Virus record (IMG/VR): IMGVR_UViG_3300023174_000038
Span: 284,702-348,701 of that record
Reading direction: 5' to 3' (one strand)
DNA length: 64,000 nt
The notes beneath the pieces are model-generated. The model saw only the letters and a list, made by a program, of their open reading frames with translations, searched no databases and had not been told where the DNA came from. The position numbers and the translations under genes were made by a program. Shown here in pieces: positions 282-45,097 of the stretch. Position 1 is the stretch's first letter. The number at the start of each line of letters is the position of its first letter.

Positions 282-1235
282 TTATTGAAAAATTTCTGGA
301 TGTGCTTTGCCAAATATCTTAATATACTTGCCAGCCATTACATCCGCTTCAGCTTCTATTGGACTACCAGGATAACTATCACCCGGCTTAATCATATTTA
401 ATTCACCCTGACGTACATGTGTTAATTCATGGAACACAGTACGTAATATATCTACTAAATTTCTATTAGCACAATAAACCCATACTTCACCCGTCTCTGG
501 ATTATGTCTTCCAGTATGATGACCTTCTTGTGCTTCATCACTATCATAACTAAACTCTATCTTTGGAGTATTTTGTAAATTCAACTTCTTACTTGTCCAA
601 GCAAGAAACTTCTGTACAATAGGATTACTATTCAAATCTTCTTGTTCAGCTTCTGTAATGTAGGGCTTTAATAACTCTGGATCATATCCTTTATGTCTAG
701 CAGAATCTCGTAATCGTCTTAACCCTTTAGCTTCAATTTGTCTTATTCTATCTCTAGACAAGTCAAACCTATCACCAATCTGTTGTAATGTCATGTCATA
801 CCAAAATCTTAAAATTAATACTTTTCGTTGGTCATCGGTTAATCTGTCTAAGCCGTTTTGGATAATTTGTTTAATACTATCATCTGTTGCAGGCTCCTCA
901 CCAGCTGGATCTTTATATGGTACTCGTTCTGCCCTATTATAAATATCGTTTGGATCATTTAATGTTGGCATTTTATTATGAGCTCCACGATATGTAGCAC
1001 CATCTGGGTTGTAATGTCGTCCTCCAACCTCATCTAGTTTATCTTTAATCCAATTGTCTGGAGTTTTATGATATTTTCTAACAAATAAATCATGCAATGC
1101 ATCACCAGTAATACGGTGTTTCTTTGCTATGTTTTTCATTAGCTTATCAATGGTATTATAGTCGTGTTTCTCTAAGCTAGGAAGTTTCTTAGCTAGTTCA
1201 ACTGCGGCTGATTCGTATAGTTCTATTGCTCTCAT
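282..1235 (-). CDS. Modular protein: capsid-targeting-like N-terminus, sigma-70 region 4 HTH, C-terminal HExxH metallopeptidase-like domain
   Basis: Likely start MRAIELYE at 1235 (TAAATA 5 nt upstream); LTDDQRKVLILRFWYDMTLQQIGDRFDLSRDRIRQIEAKGLRRLR is a typical sigma region 4; TVFHELTH..EAEA. Confidence 0.75.
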   Translation of the reverse strand: MRAIELYESAAVELAKKLPSLEKHDYNTIDKLMKNIAKKHRITGDALHDLFVRKYHKTPDNWIKDKLDEVGGRHYNPDGATYRGAHNKMPTLNDPNDIYNRAERVPYKDPAGEEPATDDSIKQIIQNGLDRLTDDQRKVLILRFWYDMTLQQIGDRFDLSRDRIRQIEAKGLRRLRDSARHKGYDPELLKPYITEAEQEDLNSNPIVQKFLAWTSKKLNLQNTPKIEFSYDSDEAQEGHHTGRHNPETGEVWVYCANRNLVDILRTVFHELTHVRQGELNMIKPGDSYPGSPIEAEADVMAGKYIKIFGKAHPEIFQ

Positions 1236-1269
1236 ATTAGTATTTATGCTCACTTTTGATTTCACAGTA

Positions 1270-1338
1270 GCGAATTGTTACATCAGGCCAGCAGCCGGCC
1301 CACACTTGAAAACGCAAAGGTCCTAAGGTAGTGTGTTC
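1270..1338. ncRNA. Candidate structured intergenic RNA
   Basis: GC-rich intergenic stretch with adjacent stems GGCC/GGCC and CACACT/AGTGTG; family not recognised. Confidence 0.3.
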
Positions 1339-2151
1339 TTAATCATTCGTCTTACATTTAGCACGTTTAGCATTGGTTAATGCTCCGTAATCTACTGGCC
1401 ATTCTTTACCAGGCTGTAACTCTTTAGCGTTTGCAGGGAAATGGTACTTTACACCTGCATATTCTTGTATCTGTGCTAATGGAGCACGAAACTGTGTCAA
1501 ATCATTACCCAAATTAACATATGGTTTCTTATGTGGGAACTGCCATCCAGCAACTTCATGTGTAACATTGTTAATAACAATCTTGTAGTAACCATGAGGA
1601 ACAACTACACCATTACCAATCTTTTCATTACCTGTACCATAATATGCACCTACATAAATTGTGAATGGTTGTTTTAGTTGTACTGCCCATCCACGTATAC
1701 TTGTTTCTAATAGTTTCCATATGCCACGATTCAATGAACCATGTTGAGGATACATATTAGTCATTAAAAAACTTTCATATTCTACTTGTTGTGTCCAAGA
1801 TAGATCACCATCTGGTGCAGCATGACCTTTGTCATAACCCGTAGCTACATAATCATCAGGCTTTGCACCATCTTTAATACTAGCATCAGCAACAAAAGCG
1901 TTTGTTCTTGGGAAACAACCTAAAGCATTTTCTGGCTTAAGAGTGTATGCTACATATACTGGTATCTTTGCTGGCGAATCATATGCTACAAGATATGCTT
2001 CACGACATATTGGTTGTGATGGTCTTGCTGTTTGTGCAAATCCGTACGGACTATGTATTTGACATTGTTGTACTGGTAAGGGAGCACGTTGATCCCATGC
2101 AAATATATTTGTTGATATTAGTACTGTTGCTATTGCTATTATTTTTTTCAT
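1339..2151 (-). CDS. DNA/RNA non-specific endonuclease (NucA/EndoG family) with signal peptide
   Basis: YDKGHAAP (DRGH-type) and TNMYPQ..LNRGIWKLLE motifs; N-terminal MKKIIAIATVLISTNIFA. Confidence 0.9.
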   Translation of the reverse strand: MKKIIAIATVLISTNIFAWDQRAPLPVQQCQIHSPYGFAQTARPSQPICREAYLVAYDSPAKIPVYVAYTLKPENALGCFPRTNAFVADASIKDGAKPDDYVATGYDKGHAAPDGDLSWTQQVEYESFLMTNMYPQHGSLNRGIWKLLETSIRGWAVQLKQPFTIYVGAYYGTGNEKIGNGVVVPHGYYKIVINNVTHEVAGWQFPHKKPYVNLGNDLTQFRAPLAQIQEYAGVKYHFPANAKELQPGKEWPVDYGALTNAKRAKCKTND

Positions 2152-2161
2152 TCAATCCTCT

Positions 2162-2788
2162 TTATCCTACTACTGTACGATTCTTTACTTTACTAATTTC
2201 TACACTGAGTGGTGTATTAGTTGTTTTTGCTCTAAATATCTTATCAGTCTCACGTACACCTGGCTTAAGTTCAGATGCTACAATTAAGAATCTTGCTCTA
2301 TTCTTTCTCATGCCAATAAACTCACCTACTAATACTTGGTAATTAGGATAGTTAGGTGTTAAATCTATTTTAGGATTTTCTTGTTCATTGATGCTTTCTG
2401 ACACACCTTGTGCAATTGCTTCACGTGCCTGACGTTCATTTTCTTGTTTGAATCGTTGCATGGCTTGACTATCATTTATTTGTCCACGATCCAGTGCTTG
2501 CCAAATTGGCAAATCAAATGTGAGATATTTTTTTTGTACTGCTTGAGCATAACTAACTTCATTGCCACGACCTTGCCAATCAGGTTTATGCCCCCAAACA
2601 ACAGATACAGATTGACCATTTGGGAAGTTGATACGCATACGCTCTCCATAAAATACATATGTACTACCTTGCCATGTAAAAGCAAGATCGCCATTAACTG
2701 TTTTACCCATAGACCAGCCATGCTTTTTTAACAGTGAATCAACTGCGGCTTGATTATCATTCTCAATAATAAACTCTGTTGCTCTCAT
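2162..2788 (-). CDS. Putative head-packaged two-module protein
   Basis: Start MRATEFIIE resembles T4 IPII/IPIII CTS MKTYQEFIAE; internal junction QGVSE-SINE. Confidence 0.6.
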   Translation of the reverse strand: MRATEFIIENDNQAAVDSLLKKHGWSMGKTVNGDLAFTWQGSTYVFYGERMRINFPNGQSVSVVWGHKPDWQGRGNEVSYAQAVQKKYLTFDLPIWQALDRGQINDSQAMQRFKQENERQAREAIAQGVSESINEQENPKIDLTPNYPNYQVLVGEFIGMRKNRARFLIVASELKPGVRETDKIFRAKTTNTPLSVEISKVKNRTVVG

Positions 2789-3228
2789 TACTCACGTTCT
2801 CTTTTTAATGTTGAACGGATAAACCATGCTTTCTTACCGTATAGGTCTTGCAGTTCAGCCATGTAGTTAGCAATACCCTGTTGACGTTCATTTGTTGCTT
2901 CATCAAACATAGCAACAACAAGTTGACCTAATGTTTCACAATCTTGTAGTAACTCAATAAACATGAGTTCAGCTCTTGGAACTTTAGTTTGGTCTTGAAT
3001 GATACTTAATTCAGCATAACGTGTTAGACTGCCAGGAGTATAGTGACCTAATATTCTGATATATTCAGCTACAGGATCAATAGTAGCATTTACATCTTCA
3101 TACAATGTATTAAAGAATTCGTGATATTGTGGGAAGTTACTTCCCTCCACATTCCAATGAAAGTTTTGTGATTTGATAGCAAAGCTTTGTGTACTAGCTA
3201 ATAGTACTTTTAAATTATCTGATAACAT
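2788..3228 (-). CDS. dps: Dps / ferritin-like protein
   Basis: NFHWNVEGSNFPQYHEFF..Y..D.VAE ferroxidase motifs, 146 aa. Confidence 0.92.
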   Translation of the reverse strand: MLSDNLKVLLASTQSFAIKSQNFHWNVEGSNFPQYHEFFNTLYEDVNATIDPVAEYIRILGHYTPGSLTRYAELSIIQDQTKVPRAELMFIELLQDCETLGQLVVAMFDEATNERQQGIANYMAELQDLYGKKAWFIRSTLKRERE

Positions 3229-3237
3229 GATTACTCG

Positions 3238-6200
3238 TTAGTCTTTCTTTTTTGTATTAACATTGATGGCTTTACCACTACGGTCAGGATTAGGATCTTC
3301 TCTACGTTTACGTTGAGCGGCACTTGCACGACCCTTCTTACCTAGACTATGTGCTTTACTTTGTGGCAAGCATTTTGGTTTACCTTCTCCTGGTTCTCTA
3401 GCACATGGACCTTTAATCTTTCCTTTAGTATCCATGCGAACCCACTTTTCTTTATTAAACCAATCATGCAAACTTTCATCTGCCCTTTCAATACCTTCTA
3501 GTATAGAACTTTCATTCTTCTTCCCACCGTTACCCCAGTTACTTGCGCCTTTGTTGCGACACTTAACTAATGCACCACTGGCATAAGCACTTGGCCATAC
3601 TTTATAACGACTCTTTACTTTGTAGTAGCAAGCATCTTTCTTTTCGTTCATTAATTCTTCACTAACCATTTCGCCACCACAGTGTGGGCAACTTTCACTG
3701 TGTTGGTCTTCATTTGTTTTATTTTTAGCACAACTACCCGGAAAGCCTGCTTTAGTACCAGCAACTCTATGATAGCCGGACCAGCATTTCAATTCATCTA
3801 GTTGATCTTTTGAATGGTCACCGTGTGTTTCACACATACCGCAGTCTTCACAGACCATTTCCATTTCAATGCTTTCATTGTGCTTCTTCTTACCTGCACA
3901 ATGAGCCTTTTGACTAAAGCCTTTAGGATGACTACAGTTAATACTGCTCTTATATTTTTGACTCCAGCCTTCATCCATCTCTTGTTCATTAACGTAAATT
4001 GCGGCAGTTGTTTTATTTAAACTTTGTGGATCTTTTACGCCGGCTGCTACTTTAATTGCTTTAACTTTTTGTCTATAGTCATCAGCATATTCGGCTAATC
4101 TGTAGCCTAACATTTTACCAATTTCTTCAGGTGTAGCTGGTTTATCTTGCGGAGTATTTGCACCAAAAGTTGTGTCTAGTATCTTAGGCCATGCCATCCA
4201 GACCATATTTGATAACTCTTTATATGCTTTGCTTCTTAATTCTTTAATTTGAGCTTCAGCCTCATCTTCAGAAATACTAGGTGCGGGTGCAGGAATAGTT
4301 CCTTTGAATGCTTGAGCATTACCGGCACCGCCTAATCCTGCGGCAGCTAATGCGCCGGCGCCTGCTGCCTTACCCATGTTACCTAAAAACCCTCTACGGT
4401 TCATATCAGCTTCTTTCAAACCTGATTTTTTACGTATATACAATCTATCCTGTAATATTGAAATAGCATTGTCTAACTTTTTATTCAATGATTGATAGTT
4501 ATCTTTTGCACCATACTTAACGTGCATACTAGTATCAGTATCATTCTGCATTGCAGGAGTTAACAAACCTTTACGTTCTAATCTATCAACTAACTTATCT
4601 AATAGTTCTTGCTTTTGTATAGCATTATCTAATTGTGCTAATCTAGCTTTTAATACAGAATGTTTTTCACCAGGTTGTGCAACTGGTGTTGGTTGAAATT
4701 CTCTACGTAAACCTTGTTGTGCTTTTTGTACTGTGTTCTTTTCAAAATCTTGTCTCCAAGCTTCTATTTCAGCTTCACGCTGTTTCTCTATAGCTAATTT
4801 AGCTTGAATCAACGCATCCAATGATGTAGATTTTAATTGATCACCTAAGTTTTCATCAATTGATGCATAACGCTTATCATCTAAATCATCGTGGTAACTT
4901 CTTTGTGGTGGTTTTTTTAGCTCTATTGGTTTCTTAGATGAACCTCTATAACCACGTTCCCATGCCGCTGCACCTGCTGCCGCACTTTTACCATTTTTAA
5001 CAAAGTGATTAATGACTTCTTGTTTACTGTTAAATCTAGGTGATTCTATACCTTCATTTGTTGCCATTTCGCCATCATTACTATGACCATAATATTTGGC
5101 TACTTTTTGTAAATCAGCAGAATTTCTATCGTTAAGATAATCAGTTACTAAATCATGTATCTGATATCTTTGTTCTTGCGGGGCTGGTAATTCTATTTCA
5201 CCTTCACTTGCATCAGCAATATGTGCGGCGCCGGGACTGTCTAAGAACCATATCTCATCATCCTCATCCCATTCTAATCCCCATTTGTCTATTGTTGCAG
5301 TTAATACATAGTTGTTAGTAGTACCTACTACAAATTTGTTACCGCCTATATAACGTGAGCTATTTGGTTGACCGTAATCTTTTGGTCCTTTAGGGCCGCC
5401 AGTTTGTACAAATTCATTTATACCTTGACTGATACCAGATTTCTTTGTATCATTAGCAAATTGTTTTTTAGTTGCACGAACAATACCACTGAAACGTTTA
5501 TCACCACGCTTGTAATCGCCCTCTTTATCAGCTTTTCCTGCATCGGCAGCGGCCGCTGTTTTATATTGTGCTAGTTTCTCATTAGAGATTTCATCTAGTT
5601 GTGATTCAGGCATTAATCCGTGCTTTGTAATACGAGCATCTAATTCATCACGCTCTTTGGAATATTTTTGTATAAGTTCTTTATTACCTACTTGAATTGC
5701 TTGTCTAAGTTTTTCCTGAATGGCATCTGCTAAATCATAGTATTGATCCATTTTCATTCTAGTGGTATTATCTTCTTTTATTGTTTTACCTTGACCTAAT
5801 TGTTGTAAATCACTTGTTAATACATCTTGTGTAACACTACCCATACCTTTTGAAATCGTAATGCGAGAATGTTTACGATCCTTACTCATAGCAACTACTT
5901 TTGATGGTTGTCCAAAATACTTAACAGTATCACCTATCTGTATGTTCTTCATAGATACATTACCAACATTAACCGGTTTATCACCTGCAAAGTTACCTTG
6001 ATCTCCCCATGGGTCATCTAAACTTTCATTTGTACCAGTAGCTAATCTATCATGGTCACTATCACGTTGGGCTTTTTCTGCCGCTGCCTTCATAGCACGA
6101 CCTTTAGCAAAATCTTTTTCTTGTCTTATTAAACCATATGGATCATACTCATCATCATCTGTTTGTGTATGTCTACCACGTTTAGGATATGATGGTGCAT

Positions 6201-6282
6201 CTGCCCCGTATTCTCTTGCTGGATCATTATGTCCGTAAAAAGGATTGGATTCGTTTATTATACCTTTTAGAATATTGCTCAT
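3238..6282 (-). CDS. 1014-aa modular polyprotein, putative head cargo
   Basis: More than 15 short unrelated modules separated by x-x-E junctions (IINE, GTNE, QLDE, GINE, SIDE, GLKE, KHNE, LMNE, SILE); internal Tat-like peptide; Cys/Lys-rich C-terminal modules. Confidence 0.7.
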   Translation of the reverse strand: MSNILKGIINESNPFYGHNDPAREYGADAPSYPKRGRHTQTDDDEYDPYGLIRQEKDFAKGRAMKAAAEKAQRDSDHDRLATGTNESLDDPWGDQGNFAGDKPVNVGNVSMKNIQIGDTVKYFGQPSKVVAMSKDRKHSRITISKGMGSVTQDVLTSDLQQLGQGKTIKEDNTTRMKMDQYYDLADAIQEKLRQAIQVGNKELIQKYSKERDELDARITKHGLMPESQLDEISNEKLAQYKTAAAADAGKADKEGDYKRGDKRFSGIVRATKKQFANDTKKSGISQGINEFVQTGGPKGPKDYGQPNSSRYIGGNKFVVGTTNNYVLTATIDKWGLEWDEDDEIWFLDSPGAAHIADASEGEIELPAPQEQRYQIHDLVTDYLNDRNSADLQKVAKYYGHSNDGEMATNEGIESPRFNSKQEVINHFVKNGKSAAAGAAAWERGYRGSSKKPIELKKPPQRSYHDDLDDKRYASIDENLGDQLKSTSLDALIQAKLAIEKQREAEIEAWRQDFEKNTVQKAQQGLRREFQPTPVAQPGEKHSVLKARLAQLDNAIQKQELLDKLVDRLERKGLLTPAMQNDTDTSMHVKYGAKDNYQSLNKKLDNAISILQDRLYIRKKSGLKEADMNRRGFLGNMGKAAGAGALAAAGLGGAGNAQAFKGTIPAPAPSISEDEAEAQIKELRSKAYKELSNMVWMAWPKILDTTFGANTPQDKPATPEEIGKMLGYRLAEYADDYRQKVKAIKVAAGVKDPQSLNKTTAAIYVNEQEMDEGWSQKYKSSINCSHPKGFSQKAHCAGKKKHNESIEMEMVCEDCGMCETHGDHSKDQLDELKCWSGYHRVAGTKAGFPGSCAKNKTNEDQHSESCPHCGGEMVSEELMNEKKDACYYKVKSRYKVWPSAYASGALVKCRNKGASNWGNGGKKNESSILEGIERADESLHDWFNKEKWVRMDTKGKIKGPCAREPGEGKPKCLPQSKAHSLGKKGRASAAQRKRREDPNPDRSGKAINVNTKKKD

Positions 6283-6283
6283 A

Positions 6284-7165
6284 TCACGCTTTCTTATTCT
6301 TGTTATCTAACATGCCACGCTTATTAGCTGTTGCCCAAGCAATGTTCTCCGCTTCTTTTTTACTGTGACCTAATTTCTTTTCACTTTGTGCTACATGCTT
6401 AACCATACGGTCTACTTTAGCACCTTCATCTATTGGTGCATGAACTGGACATTGGTCTTGACCATGTGTTCTACACACACATTTCAAATTAGGTTTGCCT
6501 TCTGCTACGCCCTGTTGACCATACGTATCAAGAATTTGTCTAACATAAAAATTATAAAAACCACGACGGCTATTGTATTCTCTATCTCCAAGTACAGTCT
6601 TTAGTGCTTTTACAGCATCAGTTACTTCTGGGCCACGCATTATTTTTAATGAGTCAGTAACTAGTGTATCACCTCTTTGTGAGCCTTCTGATACACCTTG
6701 AACTTGTTTACCTTCTAAGTATTCACGTATAGTGTTTAGATAATCATTGGCTTTAATAATCTTTTCTTGTACCCAACCATCAAGACCTTCTTCTTCACTA
6801 AGGTCTTTAATCATTGAATAAACTTGTTGAGCATTCTTTGCGGCACTGAATAGATCACTACGTGCCATCTCAACTTCGTGGTCTATACGACTTTGACCAT
6901 GTGGCACAAATCCATTTTTACGACTACGTCCTTGTCCCGGAACGACAATAACATCATCTTCTTGTAGTTCTGCTTCACTTATTTCAGCACTTTCATTAAT
7001 GCTGTTAGCATATGGAGCACTAGTCTTTTTACCCTTGAATAGTGTGCCTACTTTCTTGCCACCATATATGCTAGGATTTCCCCTAGATTGTGTGCCACCT
7101 AATGGTGAATTTACAGTAGCTATTGCACCTGCTGTTGTAGTTTCAGTGATTTGTTTGATTTTCAT
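6284..7165 (-). CDS. Modular putative head-packaged protein
   Basis: MKIKQITE start; junctions SINE, ELQE, QGVSE, QGVAE, PIDE. Confidence 0.65.
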   Translation of the reverse strand: MKIKQITETTTAGAIATVNSPLGGTQSRGNPSIYGGKKVGTLFKGKKTSAPYANSINESAEISEAELQEDDVIVVPGQGRSRKNGFVPHGQSRIDHEVEMARSDLFSAAKNAQQVYSMIKDLSEEEGLDGWVQEKIIKANDYLNTIREYLEGKQVQGVSEGSQRGDTLVTDSLKIMRGPEVTDAVKALKTVLGDREYNSRRGFYNFYVRQILDTYGQQGVAEGKPNLKCVCRTHGQDQCPVHAPIDEGAKVDRMVKHVAQSEKKLGHSKKEAENIAWATANKRGMLDNKNKKA

Positions 7166-7219
7166 AAGGATTTCCGTACTAATAGTGTATTTATCAAAAT
7201 ACCATAATATGGAAACTTA

Positions 7220-8134
7220 TTAGATTTTGCCTGAGGGCTTTGCTGTTGGTGGGATACCTGCTCTACTAGTATTCCAATAGAATGCTTTTGCGTTCTTTTT
7301 GATACTGTCAGGCTTAACATCTACTGTTAATGCTGTACTAAAACGAGGGTCATTCTTCTGTTTTTTGCTTGGGATATAGCCCGAAGCTTCACCTACATAC
7401 ATTTCATCTACATTAGCGTACATATTGTCTAAACTTAAATGTTTGCTATGTAATTTGTCTCTCAAGTCATATAGTTTTGTAATATAGCCCCTGCTACGTA
7501 ATGCTTTATATGCTAAATTTTCAGGGCTAAACTCACCACCTTTATCTAATCCAGCTTGACGATATTGTTTAATCTTTTTTAATACTTTATTGACTTTACT
7601 TATTTTATCAGATTGTAATACTGTATCAATAATGTCTAATAGTTTTATATATTTTGCTTTAGTAGCTGTTTGGTCAAAGTTAGCTCTACGTTTTGCAGGC
7701 ATACGCAACCATTTATTATCTTTAACACTATACTCACCTAAGCTAGTGACAGGTTCTGCCGCATCTTGTATGTATAATTCTACCGGAATTCCATTGATAG
7801 TAATATCATGTGAATCATTGTATAAATCTTTTTTAGCCTTAAAGAATTCATGGTAAATGTCATCGTCAGGTAAATCCTTCATATTGACTAAGATATGTAA
7901 ATCTAAATCACTATGGTCTGTATAACTATAGGCTGCATTACTTCCGGATATAGTAATATCACGTACATCCAAATCATGTATACCCATCTCTTGTAAGAAA
8001 TCTTGTGCTATGTGTTTTAGTTGTAGTTCAACTTCAGGTTGAAGATGTTGTCCACGGAATAACTTTGGATTGAGGTTATCGTGAAATGTCACAGCATCTG
8101 ACATTTTGAATGAATGTAATTCTTTTAAGTCCAT
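7220..8134 (-). CDS. Pol-beta superfamily nucleotidyltransferase with C-terminal E-delimited module
   Basis: ITISGSNA.YSY...SDLDLH (GS + DxD) with downstream ELYIQD. Confidence 0.8.
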   Translation of the reverse strand: MDLKELHSFKMSDAVTFHDNLNPKLFRGQHLQPEVELQLKHIAQDFLQEMGIHDLDVRDITISGSNAAYSYTDHSDLDLHILVNMKDLPDDDIYHEFFKAKKDLYNDSHDITINGIPVELYIQDAAEPVTSLGEYSVKDNKWLRMPAKRRANFDQTATKAKYIKLLDIIDTVLQSDKISKVNKVLKKIKQYRQAGLDKGGEFSPENLAYKALRSRGYITKLYDLRDKLHSKHLSLDNMYANVDEMYVGEASGYIPSKKQKNDPRFSTALTVDVKPDSIKKNAKAFYWNTSRAGIPPTAKPSGKI

Positions 8135-8138
8135 AGAG

Positions 8139-8144
8139 TATTTA
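8139..8144 (-). promoter_or_regulatory. Representative T4-like late promoter (TAAATA, mostly GATAAATA)
   Basis: Same hexamer directly upstream of many genes (1241, 17227, 22729, 36929, 37647, 47666, 54947, 60617 on minus; 18474, 44076, 49588 on plus); T4 consensus is TATAAATA. Confidence 0.75.
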
Positions 8145-8156
8145 TCTAAAAACTAT

Positions 8157-8176
8157 AAAGCCCCTTTCGGGGCTTT
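8157..8176. terminator. Intrinsic terminator hairpin
   Basis: AAAGCCCC-TTTC-GGGGCTTT just after the stop of 8178..9149. Confidence 0.75.
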
Positions 8177-8177
8177 A

Positions 8178-9149
8178 TTATGCGGCAGTAATTTTCTTTA
8201 TTTCGTTACCATCTTTATCGATGAACTTCATTCCGAACTTTTCTTGCTGTTCTTGTAGGAACATAGGACCAACTGTTTTCATTAGATGTTCCTGATTTTC
8301 CATACAGAATACATAAGATCCTGAGTGACGTAATAGAATACGTTTGTCAACCCAAATCTTACCACCTAAATCACGCCAGTTCTCACAGAATGTCCAATCT
8401 TCACTATAATAACGATTCTGACGGACCGCTGTATCAAAGTAGGTTTTTAAGTGTTGGTCAAACTTAGGATCTAATCCAATGTCGTTTTTATATTGCTTAA
8501 CAGCAGGATGCGATTTGAGTTTTTCAAACACATGTTTCTTCATCAATAAGAAACCTGTACCTGCTTTAGATACTTCTTGGAATCCATCTGGTCCTTCTTC
8601 TGCACCTTCAAATCCATTAACAACCCATTTAATTGGCATTGTTTTCATTGGATATAATCCTGCACAAACATCTACGTTACGGTTCAATAGAACTAATAGA
8701 TGCCATGGTTCCCAACCAATGTCAGCATCAACAAAGAATAAATGTGTTGCGTCTGGCATATCTAGGAACTTAGCAGTCAATGTATTTCGTGCTCGGCTAA
8801 TAAGTGATTCATTAACCATTGTTTCTAATGTCCAATCAATACCAAGTTGACGAGCTGTATTAGCCCACTTGATAAATGACATGAATGTTGATTCTGTTAA
8901 CATACCACCATAGCAGGGCATAGCGATATGTACTTTAGTAGTTTTTAAAAAGTCTACATTAACTTGAACTTGTCCGGGACTCGGTGCTTGTTCTTTTGCA
9001 GCCTGTTCAGCGATTTCCTGTATTTTTTCTACGGGAACTGTTTTTTCTGACATGTCTACTTTAGGTGCTTTAGTAGCTTTAGTAGTTGTTTTTGTTGCGG
9101 CTTTTGCAGGTTTGTCTGCTGCCTTGTCGATTGTTTTCTTTGTTGCCAT
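8178..9149 (-). CDS. GT-A fold glycosyltransferase-like protein with Lys/Ala/Thr-rich N-terminal tail
   Basis: IAMPCYGG, LFFVDADIGW (DxD), YSEDWTFC. Confidence 0.75.
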   Translation of the reverse strand: MATKKTIDKAADKPAKAATKTTTKATKAPKVDMSEKTVPVEKIQEIAEQAAKEQAPSPGQVQVNVDFLKTTKVHIAMPCYGGMLTESTFMSFIKWANTARQLGIDWTLETMVNESLISRARNTLTAKFLDMPDATHLFFVDADIGWEPWHLLVLLNRNVDVCAGLYPMKTMPIKWVVNGFEGAEEGPDGFQEVSKAGTGFLLMKKHVFEKLKSHPAVKQYKNDIGLDPKFDQHLKTYFDTAVRQNRYYSEDWTFCENWRDLGGKIWVDKRILLRHSGSYVFCMENQEHLMKTVGPMFLQEQQEKFGMKFIDKDGNEIKKITAA

Positions 9150-9200
9150 TTGATCCTCTTGTTAAGATACTATTATTTACATCAAAACAAGGGGGTCAAA

Positions 9201-10307
9201 TTATTTTTCCTCTAGATAATCCACACTTTCGGTAACCTTAACTGGATCTTCTTCTGCGTTTCTAAACTCAAAACGACTTTGTTGTAGATTGTACTTTTTA
9301 ATAGCTAATTCTAAATATCTATCAATTAAATTGTACGGTACTTTACGATTAACTAACAGAGGTGTTCTTCTTGGACCATCTAAGTAATATACATCTACAT
9401 ATTGTGGATGAAATACTTTAGCTGTTTTTTCTGCTTCTGCCAAACCTTGCTTTACTGTTTTATAAGCACTCTGTAGCACAAACATATATTCTTTATCTGT
9501 TATATCCGGTAGTATACCTTCAACTGCTGTATTGAAAAAGTCATCACCTGCTATCATATTCATAGCATGTATCATACCCAATTCATCAACATTTTTTTGT
9601 TTTGCTACTTGTATAGCAATTTCCAATAGTTTTCTTATTCTACGATTTCTATCATTCTCGCCACCACCATCACCCCTGTCGCTACTCGGCGGGACAAATT
9701 CATTTAATGATCCTTCTGACAATTCATTACCCATACCCATATCTAACATCTTAACAACATTAGCGGCTAGTTTAGGATTCTTTTGTGTTGCAGGATATAA
9801 ACTCATAACCATTGCTGTCTTACGCTTATCATTCAATGTAGGCCATGCATTACGTATCTCTGTGGCACTAGTGATACCAGGACCAAATTCTACTGTGGGT
9901 AAATAAGCCATGTAAGCATGTTTGCCAAATGGTTGTACATTTTCGCCTGTGTATGGTTGAAAGTATGCCGGACTACCGTCTTTCTTTGTACCACCTGGTT
10001 TAGGACTTTCATTACGATCCTTTTCACTACGAACAAAGATTACCACGTCTTGTTCTGGATTAAACTTATCAGTGATTTCTCTAGGTTGAAATGGACTTTT
10101 AACTTGTATAAAATGTCCAGGACTAACTCCTGCTACCTTAGCTAGTTTTTCTTTAATAGCAAAGGGGAAAGGTCTGGTCTTTGTATCATTGGTAGCGGCT
10201 ACATATACATCAGCACCGGGAAATGCTTTAAGTGCGGCTTGGTACAACGATGCATGACCAGCATGAAAAGGATGAAAGCCTCCTGGCATTATAACAACTG
10301 TACTCAT
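9201..10307 (-). CDS. HIGH-motif (cytidylyltransferase-like) nucleotidyltransferase plus C-terminal E-delimited modules
   Basis: Likely start MSTVVIMPGG; GGFHPFHAGH, ITSATEIR; junctions ELSE, SLNE, QGLAE. Confidence 0.8.
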   Translation of the reverse strand: MSTVVIMPGGFHPFHAGHASLYQAALKAFPGADVYVAATNDTKTRPFPFAIKEKLAKVAGVSPGHFIQVKSPFQPREITDKFNPEQDVVIFVRSEKDRNESPKPGGTKKDGSPAYFQPYTGENVQPFGKHAYMAYLPTVEFGPGITSATEIRNAWPTLNDKRKTAMVMSLYPATQKNPKLAANVVKMLDMGMGNELSEGSLNEFVPPSSDRGDGGGENDRNRRIRKLLEIAIQVAKQKNVDELGMIHAMNMIAGDDFFNTAVEGILPDITDKEYMFVLQSAYKTVKQGLAEAEKTAKVFHPQYVDVYYLDGPRRTPLLVNRKVPYNLIDRYLELAIKKYNLQQSRFEFRNAEEDPVKVTESVDYLEEK

Positions 10308-10894: not shown

Positions 10895-11620
10895 TTAAAT
10901 AGCTTCTGGGCGTTTTTCTAATTTGTAACGTTTTCCAAGAAATTCCCCGTGCATTAGTGCTAGATAGCTTAATAGGGTTTCGTCATCATAATCAATAAAG
11001 TGATTACTATTGGTATAACGATAGCGCCAACTCCATGAAGGAGCAGTATTATTGTATCCTTGTAACCAGTATTTTAATGACGGGCTAGGATGTAAGTCTT
11101 TGGAACGTTTCAATAAATCATCTAATTGCGTAACAAATGATTCTTGGATCATTTTAGATTTCAAATAAACCCTATACTTATGTTTAGGGTCATTAACAAA
11201 TGCTTTTATTCCTACAAAATTATTTGTTTGAGCTTCTGTATAATCATAAAAGATACCATTTTTAATACTTTCACTAGTCTTTAATAAGGCTAAATCATTG
11301 CTAAAGATTGCTATTCTATTACTCTCAATACGAACTAATCCGGTATTGTTTTCTTTAATCATATTACGAAAATCTATAAACTTCCCAAGAGCCTCTAGAT
11401 TTTCTGTAACTACCGGTCTATCTGCATCTTTTATCTTTTTCCAACCAGTTAAGATATTATATCGTTTCATCAACCCATCAAAGTTTTTTTCATACATAGC
11501 ATATCTAACACCCTCTATAGAGAATCTTACACGATACTTGTATTTGCCATAGTAATCACTATCCCGATAATCGTAAAAATCAATACCCGGAGTATCAGTT
11601 GCTAATTTCAATAATCCCAT
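10895..11620 (-). CDS. Hypothetical protein
   Basis: 241 aa ORF with normal composition, follows clpA. Confidence 0.6.
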   Translation of the reverse strand: MGLLKLATDTPGIDFYDYRDSDYYGKYKYRVRFSIEGVRYAMYEKNFDGLMKRYNILTGWKKIKDADRPVVTENLEALGKFIDFRNMIKENNTGLVRIESNRIAIFSNDLALLKTSESIKNGIFYDYTEAQTNNFVGIKAFVNDPKHKYRVYLKSKMIQESFVTQLDDLLKRSKDLHPSPSLKYWLQGYNNTAPSWSWRYRYTNSNHFIDYDDETLLSYLALMHGEFLGKRYKLEKRPEAI

Positions 11621-13871
11621 CGGATCCTACTTTCGCTATTGATTTCTGTACTACATTGAACTCAATTTTATCATCTACTAATACACAAGTTACTGTAGCA
11701 TTTTTAATACGTTCAAACAATACTTTCTTACTGAGAGGTACACGAATCAATTCATCAATCTTCCGAGCTAATGGACGAGCACCCATCTTCTTATCATAAC
11801 CCTGTTCAGCCAAATAATCAATTACTGGCTCAGTTAAATTCAAACTGACATTATACTTGTCAAGTAATGATTTCTTTAGTTCTTCTGTAAACTTAATTAC
11901 AATCTTCTTAATAGCCAATGTATCTAGTTTACCAAACTTACAAATCAAATCAACACGATTTCTAAATTCTGGTTTGAAGAACTCTTTAATTGCTTTATCA
12001 TCCTCACCTGTCTTTTCTTGGCTACCGAATCCGATATTGTTTTTCTCACTATCACTACTACCCAAGTTACTAGTCATAATGATGATAGTATTTTTACAGT
12101 TAACTTCTTTACCATTACTACCAGTGATACGACCTTCATCTAACATCTGTAAGAAGATATTAAAGATATCCGGATGAGCTTTCTCTACTTCATCAAAGAG
12201 TAAGATACTATGTGGGTTCTTGCTCAAATCATTGATTAATCGTCCACCACCTACTTGACTATCACCAAAGCCAACATAGCCAGGAGGAGGACCAATCAAA
12301 CTTGATACAGAATGTTTCTCACTATATTCTGACATATCATACTTAAGTAATGTCATGTCAAGGTTTTTACTTAGTAGTTTAGCTAATTCTGTTTTACCTG
12401 TACCAGTTGGGCCTAAGAAGATAAAGCTTGCTGTAGGTTTGTTCTCATTACCAATACCAGCAAATGACACATATACACGTTCTAATACTTGTTCAACTGT
12501 TTCATCTTGTCCATACAGTTTACCTTTAATGTTAACTTCAAGGCTACTAATACGGTCGTAGTTATCATCGTTTAGTTTATCAGCAGGTACACCAGTGAAT
12601 CGTTCAACTTGTTCGTGTATTAGTTCTTTGGTAATTAATGCACCTTTGTTCATTGCAACACGTTGTTTAGCACAAGCCGCATCTAGCAAATCAATAGATT
12701 TGTCAGGGTTTTTACGGTCATGAATGTAACGTGCTGAACTATCAACTGCGGCAGTTATTGCTTCCTCAGTGATTTCTACTTCATGGAAATCATTCAACCG
12801 TGAGCTTAAACCTTTGAGGATACGAATTGTACTATCATGTGATGGTTCATCAATAGATACACGATAGAATCTACGCATCAATGCACGATCCTTCTCAAAA
12901 CTTTCGTAGTATTCTTCCCAAGTTGTACTAGCAATAACTTTAAGTGTACCTTTAGTGATAGCTGGTTTAATCATATTAGCAAAGTCAATACTTCCACTAG
13001 TAGATGAACCACTACCTTTCATGGTATGTGCTTCATCAATGAATAGTACTGATTTCTTTTTTGTGTTTAATGCATCCAGTACCTGTTTAACTTTTTCTTC
13101 AAAGTCACCACGATATTTACTTCCGGCAAGCAATGCACCTACTTCAAGTGAGTATAGTTCATGTCCGTGTAAGAATTCCGGTACTGTTTTATCAACTAGC
13201 ATTTGTGCTAGACCTTCAGCGATAGCAGTTTTACCTACACCCGGATCACCTACCATCAATACATTTGATTTGAAACGTTTAGCAAGAACATTAATCATAT
13301 CATCAAGTTCTGTACTACGACCAATCAACGGTTCAAGTTTACCTTGTCGTGCAAGATCGGTTAAGTTAGTAGTATATTCTTCAAGGATTTCATCAGCTTG
13401 ACTTTCTGATAGTTTAGCAGTGAACTCTTGACCCTTATATGTTTTTTGCCAATGTGCCACGAAATCATTTTTATTGATACCGTATTTTAATAAGAAATAA
13501 TGTGCATGACTATTGCCCTCACTAGCGATAGAGAGATATAAGTCAATAGTAGTTACTTGTCTACGACCAGTAAACAATACTTGTGTTACAGAACGATTCA
13601 TTACACGTTCCAAGCTATTTGTTTTGCGTGGTTGAACTTCTGTATCTGGATCTACTTTAGCTACAATAGCGTGTAAGCTATCAATATATGAAGTAACCTC
13701 TTGAATCATATTTGGGGTATCGCACCCAAAACTATCCAAACATTTTTTAAATGGTGTATGTGTTATAAGAGATAACAGTAAATGTTCAATTGTACAATAT
13801 TGATGTTTACGTTGTTTAGACAACTCAATAGCCTGTTCAATGATGGCTTCAATTTCGGGTGAATTATTCAC
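11595..13871 (-). CDS. clpA: ClpA-type Hsp100 AAA+ unfoldase
   Basis: GTG start with SD; Clp N-domain; two Walker A (GDPGVGKT, GPTGTGKT) and B (FIDEAH, LFDEVEK); no ClpB middle domain; IGF ClpP-docking loop. Confidence 0.92.
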   Translation of the reverse strand: MNNSPEIEAIIEQAIELSKQRKHQYCTIEHLLLSLITHTPFKKCLDSFGCDTPNMIQEVTSYIDSLHAIVAKVDPDTEVQPRKTNSLERVMNRSVTQVLFTGRRQVTTIDLYLSIASEGNSHAHYFLLKYGINKNDFVAHWQKTYKGQEFTAKLSESQADEILEEYTTNLTDLARQGKLEPLIGRSTELDDMINVLAKRFKSNVLMVGDPGVGKTAIAEGLAQMLVDKTVPEFLHGHELYSLEVGALLAGSKYRGDFEEKVKQVLDALNTKKKSVLFIDEAHTMKGSGSSTSGSIDFANMIKPAITKGTLKVIASTTWEEYYESFEKDRALMRRFYRVSIDEPSHDSTIRILKGLSSRLNDFHEVEITEEAITAAVDSSARYIHDRKNPDKSIDLLDAACAKQRVAMNKGALITKELIHEQVERFTGVPADKLNDDNYDRISSLEVNIKGKLYGQDETVEQVLERVYVSFAGIGNENKPTASFIFLGPTGTGKTELAKLLSKNLDMTLLKYDMSEYSEKHSVSSLIGPPPGYVGFGDSQVGGGRLINDLSKNPHSILLFDEVEKAHPDIFNIFLQMLDEGRITGSNGKEVNCKNTIIIMTSNLGSSDSEKNNIGFGSQEKTGEDDKAIKEFFKPEFRNRVDLICKFGKLDTLAIKKIVIKFTEELKKSLLDKYNVSLNLTEPVIDYLAEQGYDKKMGARPLARKIDELIRVPLSKKVLFERIKNATVTCVLVDDKIEFNVVQKSIAKVGSDGIIEISN

Positions 13872-13895: not shown

Positions 13896-14693
13896 TTACT
13901 GTGTTTTAGATTGCAAAATGCTATCAGTTATACGACTGTCTATATTATCAGGTATAAAGGGTTTTAGCAAGATGATTTGGTCGCCATATGCATTAGTACC
14001 TTGTATAGGCATTCCATGTCCGGCTAATTTTAAATGCATAAATGGTTGTGTTTTTGATGGGACAGTTACCTCTAGTGATTTCCCATTAATGGTAGTAAAT
14101 TGAAATGTAGATCCTACAATCAAATCCAATACAGATATAGAATGATTAGTATGTAAGTCATTCATTCTTCTTTCATATTTTAAATGATTATGTACCCTAT
14201 ATTCTACTATTAAGTCATGTGAATCAACTACCTTTTCATAACGTACTTGTCCACCATCAGGTATACCTTTTGGAATATTTACCCTTACCATATGTAATCC
14301 AGATGGTGTTTGTAGTTTTAATAGTTCTTCACCGCCATTATAAACTTGTTCTAAACTAATCCAATAGGTAGTCCTATATGTGTTTTGTTGTTGCGGGTGT
14401 TGTTGTCTAAACATTTGTCCAAACAGATCATCCATATTGAAACCATTCATATTGAAATGAAATCCACCACCCGGGAATCCTTGAAACGGATTACCTTGTG
14501 GCATTGGGTTATCATATTGTTGACGTTGTTGTGGGTCTGAAAGAATGCGATATGCTTCTTCAATCTTTTGAAATGTAGAAGTATCGCCGCCCTTATCAGG
14601 ATGATGTTTACCTGCTAATTTTCTATATGCTTTTTTTATGTCGTCGGCATTAGCATTTTTACCAACGCCTAATGTTGAGTAATGGTCTGTCAT
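13896..14693 (-). CDS. dnaJ: DnaJ/CbpA-type co-chaperone (class II, no Zn finger)
   Basis: J domain with HPD, G/F-rich linker, C-terminal substrate-binding domain. Confidence 0.9.
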   Translation of the reverse strand: MTDHYSTLGVGKNANADDIKKAYRKLAGKHHPDKGGDTSTFQKIEEAYRILSDPQQRQQYDNPMPQGNPFQGFPGGGFHFNMNGFNMDDLFGQMFRQQHPQQQNTYRTTYWISLEQVYNGGEELLKLQTPSGLHMVRVNIPKGIPDGGQVRYEKVVDSHDLIVEYRVHNHLKYERRMNDLHTNHSISVLDLIVGSTFQFTTINGKSLEVTVPSKTQPFMHLKLAGHGMPIQGTNAYGDQIILLKPFIPDNIDSRITDSILQSKTQ

Positions 14694-17391: not shown

Positions 17392-18174
17392 TTGAGCAAA
17401 AGAAAAACTAGCGCATTACGTACACAAGACACACGGTTTTCACACAATAAAAAACAAGATAATCAAACTTTTTATACACATGAATCAAAAACGATAGATT
17501 TCTCACAAGCACAGAGGGAAATGCGGGTCAATAAAAAGCCCGTTCAACTTATCCCCAAGTCAGTTAACCAAGAAAATTACATCCTCGCACTACTGGACGA
17601 AGAGACAGATATTGTCGTAGTCACAGGTCCTGCGGGTACTGGTAAAACTTACTTAGCTATGCTTGCTGCCATAAAAGCTATGCGTAATGGTGAATGTGAT
17701 AGAATTATATTATCTAGGCCAGCAGTAGGTGTTGATGATGAAAAACACGGTTTCTTACCGGGAGATATCAATCAAAAGATGGAACCATGGACTAGGCCGT
17801 TATTAGACGTTCTGCGTGAATACTACACCACAAAGGAAATAGCCCACATGCTAGAAGAACAGATAGTGGAAATTGCACCTCTAGCATTCTGTCGAGGAAG
17901 AAATTTCAAACATAGTTGGGTAGTATTAGACGAGGCACAAAACGCAACCCCGGGTCAACTCAAAATGATTATGACCAGAATCGGCGTCGGTAGTAAGATT
18001 GTAATTACTGGCGATATTGAACAAGCCGATCGTAAAACAGCCGACAACGGGCTATTAGATTTACAAAATAGGTTGAGGAAGGGGGTGATTCCGGGATTGC
18101 AATTATGTAAGTTTGAACTGAAAGATGTTCAACGACATAAAATAATTGAACATGTGCTTAACTTATATAGTTAA
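17392..18174 (+). CDS. phoH: PhoH-family ATPase
   Basis: TTG start after AAGGAG; GPAGTGKT, RPAV...GFLPG, RGR, LDEAQN, GDIEQAD. Confidence 0.93.
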   Translation: MSKRKTSALRTQDTRFSHNKKQDNQTFYTHESKTIDFSQAQREMRVNKKPVQLIPKSVNQENYILALLDEETDIVVVTGPAGTGKTYLAMLAAIKAMRNGECDRIILSRPAVGVDDEKHGFLPGDINQKMEPWTRPLLDVLREYYTTKEIAHMLEEQIVEIAPLAFCRGRNFKHSWVVLDEAQNATPGQLKMIMTRIGVGSKIVITGDIEQADRKTADNGLLDLQNRLRKGVIPGLQLCKFELKDVQRHKIIEHVLNLYS

Positions 18175-18176
18175 CA

Positions 18177-18205
18177 AAATGGGGCTTAGGCCCCATTTGT
18201 TTTTT
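18177..18205. terminator. Terminator hairpin between convergent genes
   Basis: AAATGGGGC-TTAG-GCCCCATTT followed by T-run. Confidence 0.75.
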
Positions 18206-18458
18206 CAGTAATAGTTGCTTCTTTTTCAAGTTGTGCAATAAGATTAGGATAAATTCGTACATAATAATCATGCATCCTATCCCACTCACGTTCTAATGAC
18301 TTACCTTCAATTACACATTTATCTACTTTTTTCTTAGCATAATCTAATATAACATTGCAGGTCTGTAAGTCGCTTGGCTTAACTTTTTTAGCAACAGTAA
18401 CTTGTTCATCAATTTGCCCGCCGGGCTTCCTCAGGAATTGGATTAGTAAATAACGCAT
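18186..18458 (-). CDS. Hypothetical protein
   Basis: 90 aa ORF. Confidence 0.6.
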   Translation of the reverse strand: MRYLLIQFLRKPGGQIDEQVTVAKKVKPSDLQTCNVILDYAKKKVDKCVIEGKSLEREWDRMHDYYVRIYPNLIAQLEKEATITEKTNGA

Positions 18459-18471
18459 TTTAATCTTTCTG

Positions 18472-18552
18472 TATAAATAGTAGTGTAGCCCACGAGAATC
18501 TGACCTCTCCGACTACTCTAATGCTCATATCTTGAAAGGAAGCACCAGCATG
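18472..18552 (+). promoter_or_regulatory. Late promoter plus conserved structured HEG leader (copy 1)
   Basis: TATAAATA then AGT-GTAG..CAC-GAGA/TCTC-C..CTAC-TCTAA-TGCT..AAGGA-AGCA-CCAGC-ATG. Confidence 0.8.
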
Positions 18553-45045: not shown

Positions 45046-45049
45046 ATGG

Positions 45050-45097
45050 TAACTCCTGTAATACATTTATTATACTACAGGAGAGTTGTAAAGTAAA
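45050..45097 (-). promoter_or_regulatory. Sigma70-type promoter inside an RBS-occluding hairpin
   Basis: TTTACT-17-TATAAT; stem CTCCTGTAGTA/TATTACAGGAG covers the SD. Confidence 0.7.

Follow-up and report, generated by a model that had tools for sequence, protein, structure and literature searches.

Shuffled small-module proteins with putative T4-like capsid-targeting leaders in an uncultured freshwater jumbo phage

Main finding

An uncultured freshwater jumbo phage encodes putatively late-expressed proteins made of shuffled small modules, each string headed by a T4-like capsid-targeting leader and joined by glutamate-ended linkers, an arrangement that looks like a way to load many pre-made proteins into the virus head, although cleavage and packaging are inferred from sequence alone. 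The window analysed is the whole 64,000-nucleotide stretch that forms the last 64 kb of a 348.7-kb IMG/VR jumbo-myophage contig (IMGVR_UViG_3300023174_000038). A sequence-only reading of the window had proposed that ORFs within 282-10307 and elsewhere start with short leaders ending in E, that their bodies are strings of unrelated modules separated by (I/L/V)-x-E, N-E or D-E junctions, and that one leader loads a concatemer which the prohead protease dices into peptides and enzymes delivered with the DNA. The observation proved to be real, and stronger than could be known from the window, whilst the interpretation is only partly supported. The features concerned are as follows (P1, P3, P5 and P6 denote proteins; positions around a presumed cut are called subsites).

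282-1235, minus strand: P1, 317 aa from the ATG at 1235, with a leader (1212-1235), a 61-aa helical module ending L-D-E (1029-1211), an isolated sigma-70 region 4 (708-851), a leader-like linker ending Y-I-T-E (651-671) and a predicted minimal zincin metallopeptidase (285-647).
1339-2151, minus strand: Sec-signal DNA/RNA non-specific endonuclease (Pfam Endonuclease_NS, E 1e-36), in the same operon but not part of the leader/linker system.
2162-2788, minus strand: P3, 208 aa, with a leader (2762-2788), an N-module, a linker QGVSE-SINE (2384-2410) and a C-module (2165-2383).
2788-3228, minus strand: Dps/ferritin-like protein (Pfam Ferritin, phrog_3636), in the same operon, without leader and not mosaic.
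3238-6282, minus strand: P5, 1014 aa, about 13 modules, with a leader (6250-6282), junction E at residues 11, 86, 170, 235, 290, 410, 477, 624, 766/771, 806, 858/863 and 924, and C-terminal Cys-rich basic modules (3241-3969) shared with cyanophage hypothetical proteins.
4309-4410, minus strand: internal twin-arginine-like signal (P5 residues 625-658), R-R-G-F-L, an Ala/Gly-rich hydrophobic stretch and A-Q-A, starting one residue after junction L-K-E 624.
6284-7165, minus strand: P6, 293 aa, with a leader ending I-T-E (7142-7165) and junctions S-I-N-E 58, L-S-E 124, Q-G-V-S-E 160 (6686-6700), Q-G-V-A-E 222 and I-D-E 247.
7188-7195, minus strand: GATAAATA promoter-like motif upstream of P6, heading P6-P5-Dps-P3-nuclease; a second copy at 8139-8146 precedes 7220-8134.
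7220-8134, minus strand: Pol-beta-type nucleotidyltransferase-like protein (phrog_36119) with an appended C-module (7223-7387) joined by V-D-E / V-G-E.
8178-9149, minus strand: protein with no leader and only a few breakpoints.
9201-10307, minus strand: cytidylyltransferase-like enzyme (Pfam and NCBIfam) with no leader, carrying appended C-terminal modules (9204-9722) after G-N-E 195 / L-S-E 198 and a Q-G-L-A-E linker.
32514-34754, minus strand: ORF confirmed with its leader-like N-terminus.
34767-35396, minus strand: 209-aa protein starting with a leader ending Y-I-T-E.
58583-58906, minus strand: ORF confirmed with its leader-like N-terminus.
58906-59631, minus strand: acidic 241-aa protein in a PHROG 'head and packaging' family (phrog_14154), with a leader-like start and a conserved A-L-[NK]-E at residues 17-20, behind a GATAAATA motif at 59658.
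61136-62284, minus strand: DUF6267 protein with a 21-residue N-terminal extension (62222-62284) ending S-I-N-E just before the conserved domain, which starts at residue 25 in Pfam.

A defined leader on unrelated bodies

Four ORFs in 282-7165 start with short leaders ending in hydrophobic-x-E (L-Y-E, I-I-E, I-N-E and I-T-E in P1, P3, P5 and P6), a gp21-type site. Across the window, [LI]-x-E within the first 16 residues was found in 17 of 67 genes against 7.7 expected from internal windows (p = 0.0012), although this loose criterion also catches ordinary enzymes such as the ClpA-like and IscA-like proteins. In 63 related loci the leader has a sharp consensus, M-[RK]-x-x-[ED]-F-[ILV]-x-E, carried by 86 of 1,320 proteins as 54 distinct leaders on at least 25 different, unrelated bodies, and varying in residues whilst keeping its physicochemical pattern. 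This pattern hit 71 of 1,045 coding-strand ORFs and 0 of 509 opposite-strand ORFs in related loci, whereas in control regions it hit only T4 ipII and ipIII (2 of 46), with 0 of 56 in PA5oct, 0 of 107 in Atu_ph07 and 0 of 37 in cyanophage (P-SSM2 and DSL-LC02) loci. In the T4 record, ipII and ipIII start with MKTYQEFIAE, as the sequence-only reading had stated, and the ipI propeptide ends in I-T-E. Within the window the strict pattern fits P3, whilst P1, P5 and P6 fit looser variants.

Outside the cluster, 66 homologues of the DUF6267 protein keep I/L at subsite P3 and E at subsite P1, with subsite P2 varying over N, Q, T, K and V. The 209-aa protein is a homologue (29% identity, E 6e-12) of PA5oct gp282, a virion protein detected by mass spectrometry and annotated 'structural protein, ESI-MS/MS', although the PA5oct N-terminus lacks the E. 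Cyanophage homologues of the C-terminal P5 modules likewise have no such leader.

Module boundaries coincide with glutamate

The modular organization was confirmed by homology rather than by eye. P5 alone has 1,239 homologues, strongly mosaic, and the identical protein was found in three independent assemblies. Ungapped-BLAST breakpoint clusters in P1, P3, P5, P6 and the C-terminal parts of 7220-8134 and 9201-10307 number 26, of which 15 have E within one residue (5.0 expected, p = 1.7e-5) and 11 have [LIVM]-x-E or N-E (2.1 expected, p = 2e-6), whilst ten neighbouring non-mosaic genes gave 5 of 22 against 3.4 expected, with no enrichment. In P5, 8-9 of its 10 N-E dipeptides sit on breakpoints. 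A misalignment of E junctions with homology breakpoints across relatives had been named beforehand as grounds for rejecting the cargo reading, and the two coincide. Not everything in 282-10307 fits, however, as the Sec-signal nuclease and the Dps-like protein have neither leader nor mosaic-type breakpoints, and the 8178-9149 protein has no leader, only a few breakpoints (2 of 4 near an E) and no consistent E-junction pattern.

E at subsite P1 is nearly invariant at the P5 junctions, and at four of them it was found in 58/58, 60/60, 55/55 and 60/60 homologues with variable P1', although subsite P3 is often T rather than L/I and is an invariant T at three P5 junctions, outside the T4 L/I rule. 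All 14 P5 junctions lie in AlphaFold segments with pLDDT < 50 between predicted folded modules. Modules move between internal positions and leader-headed stand-alone genes, with the boundary exactly after E. In 10 relatives the C-module of P3 is a stand-alone ORF headed directly by the leader, in others it follows a different x-x-E linker, and E is always kept. Likewise, many relatives of the 7220-8134 protein end at residue 246 or carry an extra insert, its breakpoints fall at 244-249, and its C-module occurs elsewhere as a leader-headed stand-alone ORF.

In P1, breakpoints lie at residues 69 and 189/197. Its sigma-70 region 4 was identified by Pfam (Sigma70_r4, E 8e-19) and by PDB hits to RpoD/RpoS region 4. 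The predicted mini-zincin was recognized by fold and by an HExxH motif invariant in 19 homologues, not by Pfam, with an AF2 pLDDT of 90 and top Foldseek hits to abylysin, selecase, IrrE/PprI and Wss1 at weak E of about 1e-2. P3, P5 and P6 contain no recognizable enzyme domain.

A nucleotide-conserved linker and internal Tat-like signals

The commonest linker, QGVAEG, is conserved as DNA with rare codons. The 17-mer CAAGGTGTGGCGGAAGG occurs 47 times in 29 loci, always on the coding strand, and its 12-nt core occurs in 79 unrelated contexts with sharp edges. GTG accounts for 10% genome-wide against 55-69% in linkers, and GCG for 7% against 64-80%, which needs a nucleotide-level or recent-spread explanation. 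Part of the junction conservation therefore reflects recombination or common descent rather than protease recognition. GVAE is the commonest 4-mer in unique contexts, and Q-G-[VIL]-x-E occurs five times in the window, all inside the cluster. The 17-nt element matches at 6684-6700 in P6 and 9433-9449 in the cytidylyltransferase-like gene, with a degenerate copy at 2394-2410 in P3.

Twin-arginine-like signals (R-R-x-F-L, hydrophobic stretch, A-x-A) were found in P5 and 20 further contexts in relatives. All 30 occurrences (21 unique contexts) are internal and directly follow a hydrophobic-x-E junction, rather than lying at the N-terminus as expected of Tat signal peptides. Profile support is weak (TAT-target model, E 0.019, below its cut-off), and export is inferred only. 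The signals would need a free N-terminus, and would become N-terminal only after cleavage at the preceding E or through internal initiation, for which no clear ribosome-binding site precedes the internal Met.

Shared promoter-like motif and prohead protease in relatives

The motif GATAAATA occurs in 19 copies against 6.2 expected (0 of 100 shuffles reach 19), nearly all on the coding strand just upstream of genes, including sheath, tube, fibre and neck genes. Leader-headed ORFs are nevertheless mostly inside operons and not directly behind the motif.

Related freshwater group-2.2 jumbo phages have portal, Peptidase_S77 (gp21-type) prohead protease (E 2.9e-25), scaffold and Gp23 capsid genes with leader-headed ORFs beside them, and their capsid protein has an invariant A-L-L-E-G near the N-terminus. 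Group 2 jumbo phages generally carry S77 (PMC7824862). However, neither the window nor the 63 cluster loci contain head genes, the source contig's own protease and capsid genes were not recovered in three attempts, and no contig examined carries both the cluster and the head module.

Interpretation and alternatives

Every sequence-level prediction of the cargo model that could be tested held, and we consider it about as likely as not (probability roughly 0.5) that these genes encode cargo for the phage head, built on the T4 internal-protein principle but concatenated. In this view, the N-terminal leader (M, basic, x, x, acidic, F, I/L/V, x, E) would target the protein to the prohead core, and the gp21-family protease would cut after the leader's E and after the E of each inter-module linker, with a motif of roughly [I/L/V/T/M]-x-E and N, A, S or D common at subsite P2. 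One late-expressed polypeptide would thus be released as many small, often basic or Cys-rich proteins and a few enzymes or decoys (sigma region 4, mini-zincin, nucleotidyltransferase add-ons), which would travel with the DNA into the next host. The linkers would double as recombination joints, explaining the extreme module shuffling. What our analysis establishes is the leader and linker grammar, its specificity, its coincidence with module boundaries, its location in predicted disorder, the promoter sharing with structural genes and an S77 protease in related phages, whereas targeting, cleavage, presence in virions and delivery are inferences. In the literature, the capsid-targeting sequence is the only conserved part of diverse T-even internal proteins, gp21 cuts after L/I-x-E, and fusions as large as beta-galactosidase are packaged (PMC9026906, PMC3012670).

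The strongest, though unlikely, alternative is that the proteins act uncleaved as multidomain polyvalent proteins, which can be delivered intact (PMC5512222), the E-ended linkers being flexible acidic spacers and above all DNA-level recombination joints for in-frame swapping, with E a by-product of a few spreading linker sequences. The nucleotide conservation of the 17-mer and the frequency of GVAE are consistent with this. However, junctions with no nucleotide similarity (A-T-x A-A-T G-A-A types against G-T-G G-C-G G-A-A) all keep E at the same place, orthologous junctions keep E whilst subsites P2 and P1' vary, leaders of one defined pattern head the strings, and an internal Tat-like signal has no use in an uncleaved protein. 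Less likely still, the strings may be late cytoplasmic polyproteins cut by the mini-zincin of P1 or a host enzyme, with pieces acting in the infected cell or being exported. The same operon encodes the conserved HExxH protein, a secreted nuclease and a Dps-like protein, embedded zincins are proposed processing enzymes of polyvalent proteins (PMC5512222), and Tat export would work from the producing cell too. Against this, the leader specifically matches the T4 pattern, cleavage after E with a hydrophobic P3 subsite is the hallmark of S77 proteases, leader-headed ORFs lie beside portal and capsid genes in relatives, and nothing found here suggests glutamate specificity for this zincin. The least likely possibility is that no processing system exists, the N-terminal pattern being a translation-initiation or folding feature and the strings chance fusions of small genes in a fast-evolving accessory region. 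The loose criterion does hit ordinary enzymes, the modules return no Pfam hits, and they exist as separate genes in relatives and cyanophages, but the constancy of pattern across 54 leader variants, the junction enrichment (p of about 1e-5 with a clean control) and the identical 1014-aa ORF in three assemblies argue against it.

Comparison with known systems

As in the T4 internal proteins (IPI, IPII, IPIII, Alt) processed by gp21, which carry an N-terminal propeptide of about 10-19 residues, a short leader of the same pattern ending in hydrophobic-x-E sits on unrelated bodies, the predicted products are small and often basic, and the phage belongs to the T4 superfamily (gp18, gp19, gp15 and gp13/14-like genes). 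Here, however, many modules are concatenated in one ORF between internal E-linkers and shuffled on a large scale, the leader is one residue shorter between M and E-F, and subsite P3 can be T or V. Inner-body and ejection proteins processed by the gp21-like proteases of phiKZ (gp175) and SPN3US (gp245) also involve jumbo phages, cleavage after E following a short motif (reported as S/A/G-x-E for phiKZ gp175), several sites per substrate and cargo ejected into the host (PMC10052503, PMC9026906). In SPN3US, all identified substrate cleavages remove N-terminal propeptides, whereas here the pieces themselves would be the products; no sequence relationship to those proteins was found, and the phage group differs (2.2, not phiKZ-like).

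Polyvalent proteins of phages and conjugative elements (Iyer et al. 2017, PMC5512222) similarly join 2-15 disparate domains in one polypeptide, as P5 (about 13 modules), P6 (six) and P1 (three plus the leader) do. They are predicted to be delivered with the DNA, release by proteolysis has been proposed, and the domain vocabulary overlaps (zincin peptidase, Pol-beta nucleotidyltransferase). The hallmark zincin-like peptidase is, however, absent from P3, P5 and P6, there is no Pfam match to the polyvalent-protein peptidase, release would be in trans at a defined linker motif, the modules are mostly 20-150 aa and unannotated, and a dedicated leader is present. PeSL mobile regulatory cassettes also associate short conserved nucleotide motifs at module borders with shuffling in T4-type phages (PMC2839356, PMC4122927), but they are intergenic promoter-terminator elements, whereas the element here is a 15-17-nt in-frame coding linker inside ORFs.

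A further, tentative and on balance improbable reading is that environmental jumbo phages use a two-level grammar for head cargo, in which a portable capsid-targeting leader and protease-addressed E-linkers would let one late gene deliver a dozen pre-made small proteins, whilst the nucleotide-conserved linker would serve as an in-frame recombination joint that continually reshuffles the cargo. Some pieces would carry cryptic Tat signals exposed only by the prohead cut, such that an injected fragment could be routed to the periplasm of the newly infected cell.

Genomic context and the module cluster

No near-identical DNA to the window, the last 64 kb of the 348,701-bp record IMGVR_UViG_3300023174_000038, was found among cultured phages. 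Its tail sheath was 45-47% identical to those of the jumbo phages Phosso, Atu_ph07 and PA5oct, and it also encoded T4-type tube, gp15-like, head-tail adaptor and head-closure proteins, as well as the ClpA-like and DnaJ proteins typical of 'group 2.2' jumbo phages (PMC7824862). The ClpA-like AAA+ unfoldase and DnaJ genes (11595-13871 and 13896-14693, minus strand) lie next to the cluster described here, and a role in handling head cargo is conceivable. All ORFs and N-termini listed by the sequence-only reading were present on the minus strand, and its observation of leader-headed, modular proteins with glutamate-ended junctions was confirmed and sharpened. A loose criterion, [LI]-x-E within the first 16 residues, was enriched (17 of 67 genes against 7.7 expected, p = 0.0012), although it also captured ordinary enzymes. 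The interval 282-10307 held nine genes, as follows:

P1, with a leader, a helical module, sigma-70 region 4 and a predicted mini-zincin
a Sec-signal non-specific nuclease
P3, a leader-headed two-module protein
a Dps-like protein
P5, a mosaic protein of 1014 aa
P6, a further mosaic protein
a Pol-beta-type nucleotidyltransferase-like protein
a phrog_1574 protein
a cytidylyltransferase-like protein

Homology breakpoints coincide with glutamate junctions

P5 had 1,239 homologues in metagenomes, many of which shared 85-97% identity over only 15-25% of its length, so the family is strongly mosaic. The 1014-aa protein was found unchanged in three independent assemblies and is therefore not an assembly chimera. 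Ungapped-BLAST ends piled up at discrete positions that sat on glutamates, namely T-N-E 86, S-N-E 235, I-N-E 290, T-N-E 410, I-D-E 477, L-K-E 624, V-N-E 766, M-D-E 771, T-N-E 858, H-S-E 863 and K-N-E 924. With 63 related loci added, the same held for P1, P3, P6 and the C-terminal add-ons of the two nucleotidyltransferase-type enzymes. Of 26 breakpoint clusters in the six mosaic proteins, 15 had E within one residue (5.0 expected, p = 1.7e-5) and 11 had [LIVM]-x-E or N-E (2.1 expected, p = 2e-6), whilst ten neighbouring ordinary genes run through the same pipeline gave few mosaic ends and no enrichment of E (5 of 22 against 3.4 expected). E junctions thus coincided with homology breakpoints across relatives, and their misalignment, one of the outcomes that the sequence-only reading had named as refuting its proposal, was not seen. 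At orthologous P5 junctions, E at the P1 position of the putative cleavage site was invariant or nearly so (58/58, 60/60, 55/55 and 60/60), while P2 and P1' varied. An AlphaFold model of P5 placed all 14 junction glutamates in segments with pLDDT below 50, lying between confidently folded small modules. We also considered whether the N-E junctions might be relics of overlapping stop/start (TAATG) gene borders, but rejected this because the stop and start would lie in the two other frames, so that the flanking homology could not be kept.

A T4-like leader on unrelated bodies

Across the related loci the N-terminal leader had a sharp consensus, M-[RK]-x-x-[ED]-F-[ILV]-x-E, with 54 variants on at least 25 unrelated bodies. 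The same module could be preceded by this leader as a stand-alone gene or by varied internal linkers and, in every case, the module began exactly after E, as in the C-module of P3 and that of the nucleotidyltransferase. A regular expression for the leader matched 71 of 1,045 coding-strand ORFs in the related loci and 0 of 509 opposite-strand ORFs, with no hits in PA5oct, Atu_ph07 and cyanophage control regions and exactly two in a 20-kb T4 region, ipII and ipIII. The T4 record confirmed the N-terminal string that the sequence-only reading had given for T4 IPII and IPIII, and showed that the ipI propeptide ends in I-T-E, the ending of the P6 leader, of the leader of a 209-aa protein elsewhere in the window and of an internal P1 linker. 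Reviews state that gp21 cuts after L/I-x-E, that the CTS is the only conserved part of otherwise diverse T-even internal proteins, and that CTS fusions as large as beta-galactosidase are packaged (PMC9026906, PMC3012670). In T4 an Asp at the P1 position of the cleavage site blocks processing.

Elsewhere in the window, the DUF6267 protein (61136-62284, minus strand) had a conserved 21-residue extension ending [IL]-x-E, with P2 variable, and contained a K-W-D-G stretch resembling motif I (KxDG) of ligase and capping nucleotidyltransferases, so that it may be a ligase-like enzyme. A 241-aa acidic protein belonged to a 'head and packaging' PHROG. The 209-aa protein was homologous to a PA5oct virion protein detected by mass spectrometry, whose N-terminus lacks the E, whilst pairwise comparison of a 746-aa protein with PA5oct gp281 showed no similarity.

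Promoter-like motifs and head genes

The classical T4 late promoter motif, TATAAATA, was not enriched in the window (5 against 13.8 expected). The variant GATAAATA was three-fold over-represented instead, with 19 copies against 6.2 expected and none of 100 shuffles reaching 19 (sites include 7188, 8139, 32439, 40332, 44019 and 59658). It lay just upstream of the sheath, tube, fibre and neck genes, and also upstream of P6 and the nucleotidyltransferase gene, heading the tightly packed P6-P5-Dps-P3-nuclease string, and is probably the late-promoter core of this clade. In relatives, however, the motif was not enriched directly upstream of leader-headed ORFs (7% against 16%). Further repeated or promoter-like features of the window and related loci were as follows:

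upstream of 13896-14693, 21330-21836, 44413-45066, 48284-49474 and 52727-53143: sigma-70-type promoter-like sequences (TTGAC-type box plus TATAAT-type box) preceding DnaJ and several non-structural genes, suggesting a separate early promoter class
upstream of 36921-37586 and 46942-47604 (minus strand) and 18532-19383 (plus strand): a roughly 50-nt element shared by three GIY-YIG-like homing-endonuclease-type genes, comprising ATAAATA, then TAGTGTAG, a variable GC-rich stretch, then ACTACTCTAA, which may fold or mark a mobile cassette
35467-36420 and 45943-46890 in the window, and 17864-18796 and 19835-20773 in locus L003: at least four scattered paralogues of a roughly 310-aa protein family (phrog_19111) with Gly-rich N-termini, two of them next to the endonuclease-type genes

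A tblastn search with cyanophage gp20-gp23 gave no hits in the window or in any cluster locus. Head modules fetched from related freshwater group-2.2 phages carried portal, small core-like protein, Peptidase_S77 (E 2.9e-25), scaffold and Gp23-type capsid genes in T4 order, with leader-headed ORFs beside them and an invariant A-L-L-E-G near the N-terminus of the capsid protein. One S77 protease gene of this clade lies at 8241-8870 in locus L151. Upstream of the portal, leader-headed, low-complexity proteins (1076-1789 in locus L151, 677-1525 in locus L153 and ten similar ORFs near portal genes) shared a conserved C-terminal F-x-S-[KR]-F-L-G motif and may be prohead core proteins with propeptides at both ends. 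Searches with the Yersinia-phage capsid protein, an environmental capsid protein and a degenerate capsid-peptide DNA pattern did not return the head module of the source contig among the matches listed, which is the main gap in the argument, and the sheath neighbourhoods of PA5oct and Atu_ph07 yielded no capsid or protease genes.

A linker conserved as DNA and internal twin-arginine-like signals

The commonest linker, Q-G-V-A-E-G, was conserved as DNA. GVAE was the most frequent 4-mer in unique contexts, and the encoding 15-17-nt in-frame element, CAAGGTGTGGCGGAAGG, occurred as a 17-mer 47 times in 29 loci, always on the coding strand (for example at 8457-8473 in locus L017, 13082-13098 in L042 and 9536-9552 in L062, all related loci). 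Its 12-nt core occurred in 79 unrelated contexts with sharp edges, and it uses GTG and GCG, which are rare codons in these AT-rich genomes. The window's own copies, at 2394-2410, 6684-6700 and 9433-9449, were degenerate. Protein-level selection alone does not explain this conservation, and the linker probably also acts as, or spreads with, an in-frame recombination joint.

A canonical-looking twin-arginine signal (R-R-G-F-L, a hydrophobic stretch and A-Q-A; 4309-4410, minus strand) lay at residue 625 of P5, one residue after a junction E. All 30 occurrences in the dataset, in 21 unique contexts, were internal, and all lay directly after a junction. Such signals would make sense only after a cut or with internal initiation, for which no convincing ribosome-binding site was seen, and some relatives lack the Met.

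Few modules can be named

The sigma-70 region 4 domain of P1 (708-851, minus strand), closest to RpoD and RpoS, was isolated, flanked by E-junctions and absent from many relatives, and could act as a decoy for host RNA polymerase or its regulators. A 121-aa predicted zincin had an invariant HExxH, and its confident model resembled minigluzincins, IrrE/PprI and Wss1, albeit at weak Foldseek E-values. The Cys-rich basic C-terminal modules of P5 were shared with hypothetical proteins that sit beside gp15, gp16 and gp17 in cyanophages (2486-3301 in locus L001 and 1671-3668 in L002); these are themselves mosaics of the same modules, joined by V-K-E or K-x-E type junctions, but lack the T4-like leader. 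The gene-cluster numbering of a cyanophage virion proteomics study did not map onto the RefSeq notes for these homologous modules. Pfam searches of ten separate pieces of P5 gave nothing significant, and a PDB sequence search of P5 returned nothing.

Interpretation

The proposal of the sequence-only reading, that a capsid-targeting leader loads a concatemer which the prohead protease cuts into many head-packaged pieces, is partly supported. It passed every sequence-level test available, and the leader and junction patterns are established by the analysis, whilst targeting, cleavage and packaging are inferred from sequence alone. We assign a probability of about 0.5 to this prohead-protease polyprotein model. 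That the proteins are instead uncleaved, shuffled polyvalent proteins whose linkers are mainly recombination joints appears unlikely, although it remains the leading alternative. Cleavage by another protease without packaging, or the absence of any such system, is considered less likely still.

No report of this arrangement was found in the searchable literature. The closest known systems are the T4 CTS and internal proteins, multi-site processing in phiKZ and SPN3US, and polyvalent proteins (PMC5512222), and we regard the present arrangement as a variation on these, in which the leader heads strings of modules separated by E-ended linkers. Capsid-targeting leaders and glutamate-specific prohead proteases are established only in T4 and a few cultured giant phages. 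If the grammar works as inferred, it extends the T4 principle to a large, abundant group of uncultured freshwater jumbo phages, with more than 1,200 homologues of one protein alone, shows a polyprotein strategy in a DNA phage that acts in trans through the morphogenetic protease, and gives a simple sequence rule (leader plus E-linkers) for predicting injected proteins from metagenomes. The leader and linkers could also serve as tools for loading foreign proteins into phage heads, and the nucleotide-conserved in-frame linker is a separate puzzle bearing on how phage proteins are shuffled. If the grammar works as inferred, the module pool, including the sigma region 4 domain, the mini-zincin, Cys-rich basic modules and Tat-tagged pieces, would be a catalogue of candidate host-takeover and counter-defence factors.
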